Shown in pieces: positions 17,101 to 23,100 of a DNA stretch of 64,000 nucleotides. The stretch is from Macrostomum lignano (Eukaryota): the NCBI GenBank assembly GCA_002269645.1, contig NIVC01001341.1, forward strand, positions 62,001-126,000, given 5' to 3'. The notes beneath the pieces are model-generated. The model was not told the DNA's origin. It ran no database searches and saw only the letters and a program-made list of their open reading frames with translations. Made by a program: the position numbers and the translations under genes. Numbering within the stretch: the first letter of the stretch is position 1; every line of letters starts with the position of its first letter.

Positions 17101-20100
17101 AACGAGTCTGGAAACCGGATATTCTGCTGTACAATAGGTAAGGCTCTCTTGACTGTCTTATAATCATCTTTTGCTCAAGGACCACTGCAGTATAACAGGA
17201 GGCCGATTTCCTGCAAGCAATACACTGCGGAGACCGAAAAGAGTCATTTTTTCATCAGATAATAACTTATTGCATTTGATCTGGGGCAGTGAAGATTGTC
17301 ATTCTTTTAAATTTGCATGCACATCAGCGTGCTATTCTGCTCTATTTTATATACCCCAAGGTCGGGGGTTCGATTCTCACTGGAACGATTTGCGTCCTTG
17401 ACAAGCTCAACACTGCATTGCTTCAGTTCACCCAGCTGTAAAATGGGTGCCAGCATTAGCTGGGGTTATTGAAGGTGTGTGTGGCGACCCCCCAGTCCTT
17501 GGACTGCAGGTACTCTTATTTCATGTCAATGCATATTAGTTCCTTGGGCTTATGGAATAAAAAGAAACTAGTATAACAACACAGATTGCGTCCTGTTATA
17601 CTAAGAGGCTCTTTGCTTTGCTAATTTCATTCCTGTAAAATTGCCACCATTTTTTTCACAAAGTGCCGACGAGAAATTCGATGCAACCTATCCGACCAAC
17701 GTGGTCATCGAACACACGGGCCTCATGACCTACATACCGCCTGGAATGTTTCGTTCAACCTGCAAGATTGACATCACCTGGTTCCCGTTCGATACCCAGG
17801 TGTGCAAACTGAAATTCGGCTCGTGGACCTATGATGGCGGCACTGTCGACCTGCGGTTCAAGTGCAGCAACGAGAGCTTGGTGACGATTGAGCAGCGTCT
17901 GAACGACCCTTTGAACTGCTCAGTGAATGGGGCTGGAGACACTTCTACCTACATTCCAAGCGGAGAATGGAACCTCGAAGGTTTGATAATGTTGCTTTTC
18001 TGTTACATTTGCTTTCCTTACTTGACTAACCGCGGATCTCGGGTTGTAAATTAACTTGTGCGTTTCCAATTAACCTAATTGATATGAAGGTCCGGATTAC
18101 GGATTTAGCACAGGGTTTAGAATAATTCATTGACAAAAAACGTTTGACCAAACATCAATTTACTTAATGAACTCCCTTTAGCGAAGAGATCAATTTAATC
18201 TAGCTACCTGGTAAGCTCACAAATTTTTTGTTAAATGTTGACCAGCTCTAGGCTCTCTGACATCGTCAATTAATTAGTAGACTGAGGCCCCAGACAGAGT
18301 GCCAACAGGTATCTAACAACTTGGACGTAATATCGGGGCGAAATATTCTTCTGACTGCAGTTACAACACAGTGCCGCGAGAAAATTCTTGTTAAAAACTA
18401 ATTGGGACTTTTCCGGTTTTTGCCCCAGTTAGGTCGAGTGGCACCAGCTATAAAGCCACACTGCTTGCAAGGCTGTCATATAAATTCTCCCTGCCAGTCA
18501 GCCAACATGCTTTTTCGCTTCAGAGTTGTCGAGTCTGCATAATCAAACAGAACACGAGAGGCTAGGTATTGGGGAGGGGGATTAAGGCAAAAGCCTAACA
18601 AGGCTGTTGGGCCGCGTCAGGAGCTTTCGGTTAATCAATCCATCATGCGTCATTAAAGCAAAACAAATCGAACGAGCGCGGAGTCGATAACACGAATTAA
18701 TTATTAATTTAAGGGAAAGCTTGAAGTTATCCCAACTGTTGAAAGTTTGTTTAGCACGATTAAACCAGTTATGCTAGACGGCTGATCAAATCTAGTTGAA
18801 GAAAACGGAGCTAAATTTTTGTGGAAAAAACTCGAACTACTAATTATTGCATAATTTCTCCCTCGGTAATTTGCGATTTTTTGTTATTATTTGTTATTTT
18901 TAGCTATTTCCGTTTGCAGTTTAAAAGATGATTTACTAATTTAAACACAATTTACACTGCTTAAGGCAGAAGTCAGCTGACGTTTTCATTTCAACGGCCA
19001 GATACCTAGAGCATGACTACGGACTGGAACAGGGGAGAGAGGAAAGATAATTGAGAAGAGATAAGGGATATATGGGAAAGGAGACGAGGAAAAACACTAG
19101 AAGAGAGAAGGTGAGAGGAGAGGAGAGGAGAGATTGAGAAAAGAGGAGAGGAAGGGAGATGAGAAGGAGGAGATGAGATTAGAGAAGAGGAGAGGAGAGG
19201 AGAGAAGAGGAGAGGAGAGGAGAGGAGAGAGAGAGGAGAGAGAGGAGAGGAGAGAGGAGAGGAGAGGAGAGGAGGGGAGAGGAGAGGAGAGGAGAGGAGA
19301 GAGAGGAGAGGAGAGAGAGGAGAGGGAGAGGAGAGGAGAGGAGAGGAGAGGAGAGGAGAGGAGAGGAGAGGAGAGGAGAGGAGAGGAGAGGAGAGGAGAG
19401 GAGAGGAGAGGAGAGGAGAGGAGAGGAGAGGAGAGGAGAGGAGAGGAGAGGAGAGGAGAGGAGAGGAGAGGAGAGGAGAGGAGAGGAGAGGAGAGGAGAG
19501 GAGAGGAGAGGAGAGGAGAGGAGAGGACTAGAGACCCCAGGCATAAGGGTTAACCAGGTGCCTAGCGCTAGCTAACTAGCTGCAGCGGTTCCTTACGCAA
19601 AAGAAGATCCTGTTAATCTGAACGATTGGCAATAAAAAGAGCAATTCTACGAGTATAAGAAAGGAACTTTCGAACTTTCTTATCCGATTGCTAATGCACT
19701 TTTGGTGTAGCAGAATCTGTCCACAAAGTGCGAAAACTTCCCCGCATTTGGCTTGCAGAGATTCCCGGCATTCGACACAGTAATCTGTACGACTGCTGCA
19801 CCTATCCATTCATAGATCTGGAATTCTTCATGAAAATACGTCGGAGAAAACTTTATTACATATTCAACTTGATAGCGCCATGCTCATTCTTGGCTTGCCT
19901 AGCTCTGCTAAGCTTCATCATACCGCCTGATGCTGGCGAGAAAGTCAGCTTCGGTAAGAGGGCGAATCGCATTCCATAGATCAGTGTGCAATGTACAAAT
20001 GGTTAATATTGCTTTCTGCAGGCCAGATCTGGGCTTACATGCATTGAATTTAATCCAAGATATGTCTACCAAAGTAATGGAGCTTTTGTTTGTGAAGTTT

Positions 20101-23100
20101 TGAACATGCTGAAATGCTATTTTGTTTTTGTTGTAACTGAGCAGATTGTATTCTTGGCGTCACCCTGTATTGGTGCAGTGGAATGTTGGACCTGTGCCAA
20201 ACTTGCTACCATAGACAAAAGCTCCATTACTATATGTAACCATGTCTTGGAATAAATTCAATGTGTATAAGCCTAAATGGGCTGCAAAAAGCTATAGAGT
20301 GCAGCATGGCTGGTAAGATTCTCTAGCAAGGTCTTGACCAAGTGAACAGTTGAAATTCATGTGTACTTCAACAAACAAATGCACACATTAATGCATGTCT
20401 TCAACACGCACAACTGTTGAAATTTAATTTTCACGTTTAATCTGCTTGCAGCTTGTCTATCGATATATAGCACAATTAGCACGGTATATCCCATTCATTT
20501 TCGTGCAGTACGAAGTCACTTTTTTGATGATTTTTGACGTCTGGTTCCTGGTCCAGCTGCTCTAAAAGAACCCACCTTAGATAACCTTATTGACGACGCG
20601 TCACGCGCACTAAAAAATGTTCGGTAAGGCAACACCCTATGCAAATTATCTGTGCAATTATTTAAATCTGACTGTGCTTTGCAGAGATGCCCTGTCAAAG
20701 ATTCGCCATTACCTACGACTGCTGCCCGCATCCGTTCATAGATCTGCGATATCATATTAAGATCCGCAGGCGGACCCTATACTATGGCTTTAACCTCATC
20801 ATCCCATGCGTGCTCATCTCGTCTATGGCGCTACTCACCTTCATCTTGCCGCCCGATGCTGGCGAGAAAATCTCTTTAGGTGCGTCCGTTTTTATTAGAG
20901 GCATTTTAAGTAGGCGACATTGTCACACAACCGGCGAGAGGCATTACTGCCACCATTCCGCCGACTCCCCTGAGCAGGCACACAAGCGCGCGGATACGTA
21001 CGCAGTCAAACGCACAGGCACACACTCACACAGGAGTGTACAGCGACCCTAACTTTATCTATCGTTAGGCATGTACACTTCACTGTGCCTTGGGGTTCGG
21101 GCCTCAAGCTGAGCGTTAATTTCACGAGCATAGATTCCAATGTAGCCACAAATTAATGTAACTGCACTTGGAATCGAGCCTGGGCCGCTGGCACATCAGA
21201 GCGCCGCTCCAGACAACTGGGTGGGCTTACGTTCCTTTCAGTTTGATGTTTTTCAACGATTGCACCTTGCTAGGGCTATTGAGTGCAATATTTTAAAATT
21301 ATATCTTCGAATACTTTAGAAATTGTGGCTGTTGGCATGACTGTCTGTCTGCCTTGGTTGACTGTCGTATTTTTTGAATGGATTCATCTCCACTATTGCT
21401 TAGATTTATTCTAACAGTCCTACTCTGAAGTCCAATTTAAACTGTTTTTAACCCGATAAAAAATCTATTGGCATCGAGTAATGTAGCAGGTAATTTATAT
21501 TTGTAACAATCGGAATAGAAAGCTTAGTTTAAAGTTGATATTTTTGTCATTTAATCAAACTTATTGTTGCATGAGCACTTTCTGTCGCATGCATTTCTAT
21601 TATCTACCTGCTACGAGTTGTGTCGTAGCTACCTGCTCGTATAAGTTTGGAACTACACTAAAAGAAGTTTACTCGTAGCAAAAGACGTGTGTTTATATCT
21701 AGCTTGTGTCTAACAGGTGTGTAGCTTGTGTCTAACAGGTGTGTGTAGCTTGTGTCTAACAGGTGTGTAGCTTGTGTCTAACAGGTGTGTAGCTTGTGTC
21801 TAACAGGTGTGTGTAGCTTGTGTCTAACAGGTGTGTAGCTTTTGTCTAACAGGTGTGTGTAGCTTGTGTCTAACAGGTGTGTAGCTTCTGTCTAACAGGT
21901 GTGTAGCTTGTGTCTAACAGGTGTGTGTAGCTTGTGTCTAACAGGTGTGTAGCTTTTGTCTAACAGGTGTGTGTAGCTTGTGTCTAACAGGTGTGTAGCT
22001 TGTGTCTAACAGGTGTGTAGCTTGTGTCTAACAGGTGTGTGTAGCTTGTGTCTAACAGGTGTGTGTAAATTCTGTCTAACAGGTGGAGTTTCTATGGTGC
22101 ACACTCTAAACAGATCAACGAATTTGAAGTAAAAATTTTCACAAAAAAACTTACCCAGCACTGCGCACTGTTCTTACCTAAAACTGTAGTAGAACATAAG
22201 CCCATTCATAACTAGCTGTTGTAGCATGGCCTATATAATTTGCTATAATCTATAATTTGCAGTAAAAGTACATTTCAATGACAACTCTAGGAGTGACAAT
22301 AATGTTGTCGTTAACAATGTTTCAACTACTGGTGGCTGACGCAATGCCGCAGACTTCCGAAGCGGTGCCACTTATTGGTGAGCTAACAGTTTTAAAGCAA
22401 GTAAAAACAATTTTGTTTAAATCGTTTGCTGACTTCTCATTTTCAAAATAATTAATATCTTTTAATCATACGTAACAACGTCAATTTTGTTTAACTGTAA
22501 GTTTAACGCGTTTTTTTATATTAATATTTGTTTTATTTAATTTATTTGAAAATCAATTTTGGCAAAACGATCCGGTCATTCCGTGCCTGCCAATCTTACC
22601 AGCCATGCACACTTTTTTAGTTTTTGAAAATAAATTGTTTCTAGCGATAGAACAGTGTAGGTGTGCGCGAAATACGTTGTAAAATTAATGACTTGATAAT
22701 CGTAAATTTTTGTTTAAATGTTGCAAAGCACAAATACAATGCAACGATTTTTTTGTTAATTTTCGATATCCTTTGTTTCTCACCTTCGCTATGGGACAAC
22801 ATTCGAATTGGCGAGCACAGGTGTTACCATCCTGTTGTCCTTGACCGTGTTTCTCATGATGGTGGCCGAGGCCATGCCACCGACTTCGGATGCGGTTCCC
22901 GTTATTGGTGAGACAATGGGAGGGGGCACCGTTTATGCACTATTAATAACCTTTCTTGTCATTTTTGTTTTGAGTTTTATTTCGAATTTGTTTTATTACT
23001 ACTATTGGTTTGGCAATTTAAAGAATGTTTGAAATGAAAAATCACGTGGAATGAAGAGCTGCTTCCATGCAGATTGTTGTTAAATAGTGAATTGCTTCCA

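Follow-up and report, generated by a model that had tools for sequence, protein, structure and literature searches.

Does the alpha7-like nicotinic acetylcholine receptor (nAChR) gene of Macrostomum lignano choose between two versions of its exon 7, and which part of the receptor would such a choice exchange? The gene lies complete on the + strand of the window, the 64,000-nt stretch of DNA analysed here, and carries exon 7 in two tandem copies, 7a and 7b. The two copies are probably a mutually exclusive exon pair of an alpha7-like subunit gene, one of three two-way clusters in that gene and ancient in origin; a predicted RNA duplex may link them to the choice at exon 8.

By homology, the window gene is a Cys-loop ligand-gated channel gene that encodes an nAChR alpha subunit of the alpha7-like group. 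Both isoforms match the Pfam families Neur_chan_LBD and Neur_chan_memb end to end (profile coverage 1-215/216 and 1-232/233), with respective E values of 7.9e-63 and 2.8e-51 for the 7a isoform and 4.7e-63 and 2.4e-53 for the 7b isoform. The closest solved relative in the PDB is human alpha7 (E = 4.6e-77), the next subunit type being alpha3 (6e-54), and the top database matches are named alpha-7, Dalpha6 or acr-16. The Cys-loop in exon 5/6 has its two cysteines 13 residues apart. The vicinal cysteines of loop C that characterize alpha subunits (YDCC) and the GEK motif at the cytoplasmic mouth of M2 in cation channels (PPDAGEK) are present in 7a and 7b alike; the earlier note had reported CC and PPDAGEK as conserved, without stops, in both exons, and this is correct. 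An AlphaFold model of the 7a isoform, of moderate confidence (pLDDT 67), contains helices at 173-196, 201-225, 232-266 and 286-344.

All exons are on the + strand. A candidate exon 1 (8050..8107), containing an ATG, a signal peptide and a phase-1 donor (GTGAGT), was predicted by means other than homology: it is the sole ATG-hydrophobic-donor candidate upstream of exon 2, and its in-frame join yields a 561-aa ORF with either exon 7. Exon 2 (10837..10985), located by tblastn with the gene model and flanked by AG and GT, encodes the N-terminal helix and beta1. Exon 3 is present as 3a (13943..13987) and its tandem copy 3b (14779..14823), each 45 nt with AG/GT flanks, a pair also found in the paralogue L001. 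Exon 4 (17028..17137, 110 nt) was again identified by tblastn with the gene model. It is followed by a fused exon 5/6 (17664..17980) that encodes the Cys-loop and loops B and F, and whose donor at 17980 serves either exon 7. Downstream of the exon 7 pair lie two 87-nt exons, 8a (22291..22377), which encodes TM2 from position 5' onward and the start of the M2-M3 loop and is 93% identical to 8a' of the paralogue, and 8b (22821..22907), which encodes an alternative TM2. Exon 9 (24323..24432) contributes TM3, and exon 10 (26834..27448) the cytoplasmic loop, the MA helix, TM4 and the stop codon; both are defined by homology and an in-frame ORF. The window gene contains three two-way tandem clusters, at exons 3, 7 and 8.

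Exons 7a (19759..19953) and 7b (20685..20879) are each 195 nt long, phase 1-1 and free of stops, with AG before and GT after. The earlier note had described two intact exons with valid splice sites, and its coordinates, sites and translations hold. Each copy encodes loop C, pre-M1, TM1, the M1-M2 linker and M2 up to position 4'. Exon 7b, recognized by homology, is of the canonical or b type, and 7a is of the a type. At the protein level the two are 60.6% identical over 66 aa, far above chance (tblastn E = 7.5e-26). The alignment to solved human alpha7 is ungapped over the entire exon 7, so the slot corresponds to the position of CHRNA7 exon 7, in line with the earlier assignment. An assembly artefact was rejected, as the copies are only 63% identical in DNA, and recent gene conversion between them was rejected on a nucleotide identity of ~0.62 in both halves.

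The splice partners that had been put forward for exon 7 are real, with a donor at 17980 and acceptors at 22291 and 22821; the two acceptors belong to the second tandem pair, 8a and 8b, encoding TM2. Steric exclusion is unable to enforce one-of-two use in the window gene because the 7a-7b intron measures 731 nt. As the exon length of 195 nt is divisible by three, transcripts with both copies or with neither would escape nonsense-mediated decay (NMD), and a reading-frame mechanism for exclusive use was rejected for the window gene on the same grounds of exon length.

Models P0001 and P0289 of the window gene use 7a and 8b and skip 7b and 8a. The paralogue L001 has the same order of pairs, 3a'/3b', 7a'/7b' and 8a'/8b', and their splice sites are good. 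The RNA-seq-derived models P0002, which is the L001 gene, and P0292, which is a 99% copy of it, contain 7b' and 8a' only. The database models show one exon combination per Macrostomum gene. Model P0005, from a third M. lignano paralogue, reads through both exon 7 copies, which is probably a prediction artefact. No Macrostomum transcript fragments over exons 7-8 were found; a search with a 144-aa four-isoform profile gave only short proteins of at most 69% identity. The better short matches in that search came from parasitic flatworms, and the search revealed ENA contigs with a tandem exon 7. Within the window gene, 7a and 7b are most likely used in a mutually exclusive manner.

The same pair exists in another phylum. 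An alpha7-like gene of the nemertean Lineus longissimus (XP_064652926 and others) contains an a-type and a b-type exon 7 of 195 nt each in the same phase, with 7a upstream of 7b as in M. lignano. Each of the RefSeq isoforms X1-X6 contains exactly one copy: X3 and X6 use the a type, and X1, X2 and X4 the b type. The a-type exons of Lineus and Macrostomum have the diagnostic residues RRRK in common, and the TM1 half of window 7b is 97% identical to Lineus 7b. The ENA contigs contain the same a/b pair separated by an intron of 54-75 nt, for which steric hindrance is plausible. Judged by these shared a- and b-type residues, the pair is ancient and predates the flatworm-nemertean divergence. It is not universal in Spiralia, because the Helobdella, Lingula and Sparganum genes examined carry a single exon 7.

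Two exon 7 copies also occur in Pancrustacea. The locus of the barnacle Amphibalanus amphitrite, read in DNA, contains two 195-nt exon 7 copies with AG/GT flanks beside three exon 8 copies. In Trinorchestia longiramus, Armadillidium vulgare and Polyplax serrata, two in-frame 65-aa exon 7 repeats were seen in predicted proteins only. In the pancrustacean pairs, known solely from gene predictions that read through both copies, the canonical copy precedes the divergent one. The residues typical of the spiralian a type are missing, and these exons group with those of arthropods, so the pairs are probably an independent duplication. The earlier note knew of no other duplicated exon 7, a view that is overturned by the pair in Lineus and the ENA contigs and by the other pairs in crustaceans and a louse. 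The locus also points to an origin of the exon 3 and exon 8 clusters long before the insects.

The exon 7 and exon 8 clusters may be joined by long-range RNA pairing. Intron pairs were searched for complementarity by local alignment against shuffles, which replaced whole-intron RNAduplex pairings that were global and meaningless. A single one of ten intron pairs, the 7a-7b intron with the 8a-8b intron, scored above chance, and it did so in each paralogue (z 5.5 and 4.8). Of 1000 dinucleotide shuffles, one and none, respectively, scored as high as the real sequence. The duplex has a predicted dG of -56.7 and -50.6 kcal/mol and folding z-scores of -8.9 and -7.2 in the two paralogues, and the pairing persists when the full stretch of 2.1-2.9 kb is folded to its global MFE. 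In the window, arm 1 (20286..20340, +) lies in the 7a-7b intron and arm 2 (22573..22626, +) in the 8a-8b intron. With one arm following the 7a donor and the other preceding the 8b acceptor, the placement fits the 7a+8b combination in the models. A predicted duplex of ~50 nt would pair a segment just downstream of 7a with one just upstream of 8b. It would loop out 7b and 8a and bring the 7a donor beside the 8b acceptor. The likely outputs would be an 'outer' TM1/TM2 cassette, 7a+8b, and an 'inner' cassette, 7b+8a. The duplex may in this way influence splicing.

It is possible, though rather unlikely, that the complementarity is instead a by-product, left for example by an inverted-repeat element or by chance and without a role in splicing, and that protein factors decide on exon 7 and on exon 8 separately. 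The signal comes from only two independent loci, the third locus, L009, being a 99% copy. MITE- and SINE-like repeats abound in the window intron, where a hairpin element lies just before arm 1. No comparable complementarity above chance was detected in Lineus, which has the exon 7 pair and a single exon 8, or in the barnacle. Against a by-product, the same intron pair is the sole significant one in both paralogues despite differing arms and saturated neutral sites. The arms are single-copy in each locus and not dispersed repeats, and their placement agrees with the exons that the models join. The window and L001 have arms of different sequence, yet each pair is complementary within itself; the comparison comprises two sequences whose arms do not align securely. 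A blastn comparison of the window with L001 for conserved intronic elements returned only exons and a SINE-like repeat, the introns being otherwise unalignable. A broader proposal combines two parts and is put forward tentatively. A selectively maintained duplex would couple the two clusters into 7a+8b or 7b+8a cassettes, and the three-cluster architecture (exons 3, 7 and 8) would date from early protostomes, with alternatives at exon 7 kept in Spiralia and either lost or newly evolved in arthropods.

Selection on the two copies was assessed by pN/pS for each exon between the window gene and L001. The values are pN 0.164 and pS 0.851 for 7a, 0.138 and 0.615 for 7b, and 0.138 and 0.664 for the constitutive exon 5/6. 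Synonymous sites between the paralogues are saturated (pS 0.62-0.85), while the pN of 7a (0.16) is at the level of a constitutive exon. By this measure, 7a and 7b are both kept by purifying selection, and the selection on both exons that the earlier note had suspected is borne out here and by the orthologous a and b exons in Lineus. These values bear on an improbable alternative in which each paralogue became fixed after gene duplication, the window gene for 7a+8b and L001 for 7b+8a, leaving the unused copies as silent relics and no alternative splicing within a gene. The single combination in all models of each gene (7a+8b in P0001 and P0289, 7b'+8a' in P0002 and P0292) would be expected from such fixation. 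However, the supposedly unused 7b, 8a, 7a' and 8b' retain open frames, exact length, phase and AG/GT. Their pN of 0.03-0.16, against a saturated pS of 0.59-0.85, is again at the constitutive level, and Lineus has both exon 7 forms annotated as isoforms of one gene. Joint inclusion of both exons, giving a subunit in which the loop C and TM1 segment occurs twice, is very improbable: M. lignano P0005, P0290 and P0291 and several predictions from other species do span both copies in frame, but they derive from automatic prediction or prokaryote-style ORF calling over short in-frame introns, models built from transcripts have a single copy, as do the RefSeq isoforms, and an additional transmembrane helix would invert the TM2-TM4 topology of the established pLGIC architecture.

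With mutually exclusive use as the preferred reading, the two copies would exchange mainly the membrane half of exon 7. Across genes and phyla, all seven residues that distinguish the a from the b type lie in pre-M1, TM1, the M1-M2 linker and the first turn of M2, and the loop C half shows no a/b-specific signal in the same comparison. In NJ trees the a-type exons group together, with 72% bootstrap on the TM1 half. Differences at the pre-M1 arginine cluster, in TM1 and the M1-M2 linker, and at pore-helix positions 1' and 3' are more consistent than those in loop C. The earlier note had proposed subunits with two agonist pockets and two coupling regions. Loop C does differ between the copies, but the conserved a/b residues are all in the TM1 half and none in the loop C half. 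The two subunit forms would have TM3, TM4 and all other parts of the ligand-binding domain in common and differ in loop C as well, and the exon 8 pair would exchange the remaining part of TM2. In alpha7, the TM1 and pore-base regions affect gating, desensitisation, conductance and the binding of transmembrane allosteric modulators. The isoforms may accordingly differ in gating, conductance or modulator properties.

What is new here is the exon 7 position, which is added to the known diversification of these receptors by alternative exons. Among alpha7-like receptors, insect alpha6, the target of spinosad, is the best-known case of alternative exons, which there alter loop D and TM2. Exon 7 is a third swappable module beside the exon 3 and exon 8 positions of alpha7-like receptors, and the part consistently swapped since before the flatworm-nemertean split is helix TM1 together with the pore's cytoplasmic end. 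The pair offers a natural set of TM1 variants in a homomer-forming subunit, and the predicted duplex a simple two-arm system for the coupling of two neighbouring splicing choices by an RNA loop. M. lignano is tractable to transgenesis (PMC5730564).

In insect nAChR alpha6, exon 3 (3a/3b) and exon 8 (8a/8b/8c) each come in mutually exclusive versions (Grauso et al. 2002; Jin et al. 2007, PMC1919356; review table PMC8505678). This subunit is a member of the same alpha7-like clade and has the exon framework in common with the window gene, which has tandem pairs at precisely these positions, with 45 nt for exon 3 and 87 nt for the TM2-encoding exon 8, and with copies equal in length and phase. Insect and chelicerate isoform differences map to exons 3 and 8 of the gene model. 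The flatworm exon 8 is present in two copies, whereas the insect one is present in three. A loop C/TM1 (exon 7) cluster is neither on record for Drosophila alpha6 nor present among the insect alpha6 isoforms compared, and no report of an alternative loop C/TM1 exon in alpha7-like nAChRs was found in the literature. The 'exon 7' alternatives of Bombyx alpha8 were rejected as a precedent, as they encode TM2-TM3 and are unrelated. The Lineus gene shares the exon 3 pair and the fused exon 5/6 with the window gene, but has a single exon 8, an additional exon 4 pair and much longer introns; its exon 7 pair is a database annotation for which no describing paper was found.

Two further systems are related in principle. 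In the Drosophila RDL GABA receptor, also a pentameric ligand-gated channel, mutually exclusive exons 3 and 6 alter the ligand-binding loops and agonist potency. RDL is an anion channel of another subfamily, however, and TM1 and the pore base lie outside its alternative exon. In Dscam1 exon 6, with its docking and selector sites, in 14-3-3 xi and in Mhc, mutually exclusive splicing is guided by RNA structure. As in these genes, complementary intronic elements lie beside the alternative exons, and long-range pairing would set which splice sites meet. In contrast to the Dscam1 type, the single duplex predicted here encloses one exon of each of two adjacent clusters, and would couple two choices instead of picking one exon through docking-site competition.

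The window contains a complete receptor gene on the plus strand, modeled by six-frame reading and splice-site inspection, with AG/GT at every junction. It comprises a candidate exon 1 (8050–8107), exon 2 (10837–10985), exon 3 (13943–13987, 45 nt, with a second 45-nt copy at 14779–14823), exon 4 (17028–17137), a fused exon 5/6 (17664–17980), exons 7a and 7b, the TM2 exons 8a (22291–22377) and 8b (22821–22907) of 87 nt each, exon 9 (24323–24432), and exon 10 (26834–27448), which ends with the stop codon. The open reading frame encodes 561 residues with either 7a or 7b, and both isoforms give full-profile matches to Pfam Neur_chan_LBD and Neur_chan_memb. 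P0001 (UniProt A0A1I8JFT5), a protein model of this gene, is 100% identical to the window exons, and the top database matches are M. lignano proteins. The nearest solved structure is human alpha7 (E = 4.6e-77; next subunit type 6e-54), which aligns without gaps over the exon 7 segment. This match and alignment identify the subunit as alpha7-like and confirm the placement of the segment at CHRNA7 exon 7.

Long microsatellite or minisatellite arrays occupy several introns of the gene (5.9–7.0, 8.1–8.5, 15.0–16.6, 19.0–19.55, and 23.0–24.2 kb), one of which stops ~200 nt before exon 7a. A SINE-like dispersed repeat (20889–21221) begins 10 nt past the exon 7b donor. Similar copies lie near 12337–12572 and 31201–31578, and one of 82% identity lies in opposite orientation at 26064–26388 (−) of L001, a paralogous M. 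lignano locus. Downstream of the gene, a Ty3/gypsy-like retroelement at ~33951–41030 (+) has a GC content of 0.58–0.61; its long ORFs encode reverse transcriptase and RNase H domains, and a match to integrase stays below threshold. The opposite strand carries, at 56107–56853 (−), an ORF for a rhodopsin-family GPCR domain (7tm_1, E = 1.5e-40) that probably extends into 55502–56107. A second Cys-loop receptor gene starts at 61347–62548 (+) and runs toward the window end, with an exon-3-like segment at 61347–61388, [14 protein letters not shown], and an exon-4-like segment at 62441–62548.

Reading of positions 19600–21000 reveals two open segments of 195 nt, 7a (19759–19953) and 7b (20685–20879), each flanked by AG on the 5′ side and GT on the 3′ side. 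Translated with two 5′ bases and one 3′ base left over, both are free of stops, and their peptides match those of the earlier note, which had described two intact exons with valid splice sites. The two copies share 60.6% identity over 66 residues (tblastn, E = 7.5e-26). In the AlphaFold model of P0001, the 7a segment forms β10 and then a transmembrane helix (residues 173–196) at moderate confidence (pLDDT 67).

Comparison with L001 (Mlig020283g3) bears on whether one copy is dead. L001 has the same layout (3a′/3b′, 7a′/7b′, 8a′/8b′), with good splice sites throughout, including those of 7a′ (27212–27406) and 7b′ (28061–28255). Exon 7a shares 71% identity with 7a′ and 57% with 7b′, and 7b shares 80% with 7b′; the copies at the two loci are orthologous by type. 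Between the loci, pN and pS are 0.164 and 0.851 for 7a, 0.138 and 0.615 for 7b, 0.150 and 0.750 for exon 4, and 0.138 and 0.664 for exon 5/6. Synonymous sites are saturated, and the non-synonymous divergence of 7a is at the level of the constitutive exons. Retention of frame, length, splice sites, and a pN/pS near 0.2 across this distance argues against a dead copy and bears out the proposal that both exons are under selection. A third M. lignano paralogue, P0005 (UniProt A0A1I8HTP0), also has both an a-type and a b-type exon 7. No sign of recent gene conversion between 7a and 7b was seen.

The protein models differ in the copies they include. P0001 and P0289, from the window gene and its near-identical duplicate, contain 7a and 8b without 7b and 8a. 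P0002 and P0292, from the L001 gene and a 99% copy of that gene, contain 7b′ and 8a′ without 7a′ and 8b′; the BOX15 models of these last two genes are transcript assemblies from RNA-seq (PMC5730564). Each exon 7 type is thus used somewhere while intact copies are skipped, and the models display one combination per M. lignano gene. The P0005 model reads through both exon 7 copies. This double inclusion is probably an artefact of prediction, since the remaining membrane domain would be inverted by a second TM1. We consider it likely that the exon 7 pair is a functional alternative-exon cluster. P0001 and P0289 also join exon 9 to unlike internal points of exon 10 (VPNW/QQQQAAT and VPNW/DDIRGGG), dropping most of the cytoplasmic loop; these joins reflect either intra-exonic alternative splicing or a modeling artefact.

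Contrary to the impression given by the earlier note, a duplicated exon 7 is not unique to the window gene. NCBI isoforms of the Lineus longissimus alpha7-like gene differ in exons 3, 4, and 7. Exon 7 of isoforms X3 and X6 is [65 protein letters not shown], and in X1, X2, and X4 it is b-type, sharing 97% identity with Macrostomum 7b across the TM1 half. The a-type exon (77693–77887) lies upstream of the b-type (78677–78871), the same order as in Macrostomum. The Lineus locus also contains a tandem exon 4 pair (70550–70659 and 70712–70821, with 52 nt between them), of which RefSeq X4 makes alternative use; exon 4 is single in Macrostomum. Four ENA contigs carry an a-like exon 54–75 nt upstream of a b-type exon, the intron being 75 nt in L002 (10194–10268) and 54 nt in L003 (10272–10325). 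In the a-like copy of L003, the cysteine of the M1 Pro-Cys is gone and GEN replaces GEK. An exhaustive search located further a-type exons on other contigs (P0404, P0408, P0424, P0429, and P0464).

Neighbour-joining places the three Macrostomum a-exons in a group with 97% bootstrap, which Lineus 7a joins at 52% over the whole exon and 72% over the TM1 half. This grouping by sequence has moderate support, owing to the short alignments. In the Helobdella, Lingula, and cestode genes examined, exon 7 occurs once. A different tandem pair is present in barnacle, amphipod, isopod, and louse genes; it clusters with arthropod exons and, in contrast to Macrostomum, places the canonical copy first, and it probably arose independently of the Macrostomum/Lineus pair. 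Our literature search turned up no published account of such a loop C/TM1 cluster for any alpha7-like nAChR; RefSeq isoforms using one exist for Lineus.

The a-type exons of the three Macrostomum genes and Lineus were compared with 23 exons that are either b-type or single. Of the 65 positions, seven are a-specific (30, 39, 43, 44, 54, 62, and 64), and all seven fall within pre-M1, TM1, the M1–M2 linker, and M2 1′ and 3′, the Glu of GEK being −1′ as in standard alpha7 numbering. From b-type to a-type, RRRT becomes RRR[K/R], LPPD becomes IPPD, and GEKISLG becomes GEKVSFG, and residues change just before the M1 proline and at two positions after Pro-Cys. Within the loop C half, no position separates the a and b types in this comparison, and both types evolve fast there. 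Among the Macrostomum genes, identity in the loop C and TM1 halves is 0.55–0.62 and 0.81–0.89 between a-types, and 0.66–0.72 and 0.92–0.97 between b-types. In the loop C tree (neighbour-joining), exons cluster per species, not per type. The earlier note had proposed two agonist pockets; its core reading holds, with that emphasis to be revised. Window 7a and 7b are indeed unlike at 13 of the 29 positions of the loop C segment, with Y-x-CC and the following P-F kept in both, and the agonist pharmacology of the two forms may well differ, but no conserved a/b signal exists in this half. The type-specific residues all lie in the TM1 half, and what has kept the pair over the long term appears to be the choice between two versions of TM1 and the pore base.

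The exon lengths are divisible by three, which leaves the reading frame unable to control inclusion. Steric exclusion is ruled out for the window gene by its 731-nt 7a–7b intron (654 nt in L001); it is plausible for the contigs with 54–75-nt introns. Inverted-repeat scans found, in both the window and L001, one long-range pair between the 7a–7b and 8a–8b introns. In a local-complementarity scan of all 10 intron pairs from exon 5/6 to exon 9, this pair alone exceeds chance at both loci (z = 5.5 and 4.8; others ≤ 1.3). Its score was reached once (window) and never (L001) in 1000 dinucleotide-preserving shuffles (Gumbel p ~4e-4 each). The same scan gave nothing over z = 2.7 at the barnacle and Lineus loci.

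The window duplex pairs 20286–20340 with 22573–22626 (17-bp perfect core, ΔG −56.7 kcal/mol), and the L001 duplex pairs 27432–27479 with 29420–29465 (ΔG −50.6 kcal/mol); their folding z-scores are −8.9 and −7.2. Minimum-free-energy folds of the whole stretch from 7a donor to 8b acceptor keep both duplexes, with 42 of 43 (window) and 26 of 33 (L001) paired bases of arm 1, the 7a–7b strand, bound to arm 2. The arms are single-copy per locus and unlike in sequence between loci, whose introns are otherwise unalignable. Arm 1 lies 26 nt (L001) or 333 nt (window) downstream of the 7a donor, and arm 2 lies 68 nt (L001) or 195 nt (window) upstream of the 8b acceptor. A hairpin-forming, MITE-like inverted repeat (20027–20094/20210–20278) sits between the 7a donor and arm 1 in the window, with fragments at 21834–21848 and 21948–21962. 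Pairing of the arms would enclose 7b and 8a in a loop and set the 7a donor beside the 8b acceptor, favoring the outer combination 7a+8b; the unlooped, inner combination would be 7b+8a. P0001 and P0289 have the predicted looped product, and P0002 and P0292 have the inner combination. From this anatomy we tentatively infer that the duplex could couple the exon 7 and exon 8 choices.

Mutually exclusive exons are well known in pentameric channel genes. The exon 3 and exon 8 copies of the window gene (8a and 8b are 70% identical and differ at M2 positions 8′, 13′, 15′–17′, and 20′) have canonical splice sites and agreeing phases, and both pairs recur in L001. In insect alpha6, exons 3 and 8 are the two that are mutually exclusive (PMC8505678, table; PMC1919356). 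When mapped on the gene model, isoform differences in Musca, Hermetia, Drosophila, Schistocerca, Limulus, and Parasteatoda fall exactly in exons 3 and 8, and none in exon 7. Nemerteans, a snail, horseshoe crabs, and spiders have annotated alternatives of exon 3 or 8 as well, which suggests that both clusters arose long before the insects. The window gene shares both cluster positions of insect alpha6 and has a pair at a new and ancient position, exon 7, together with a candidate RNA loop coupling two exon clusters.
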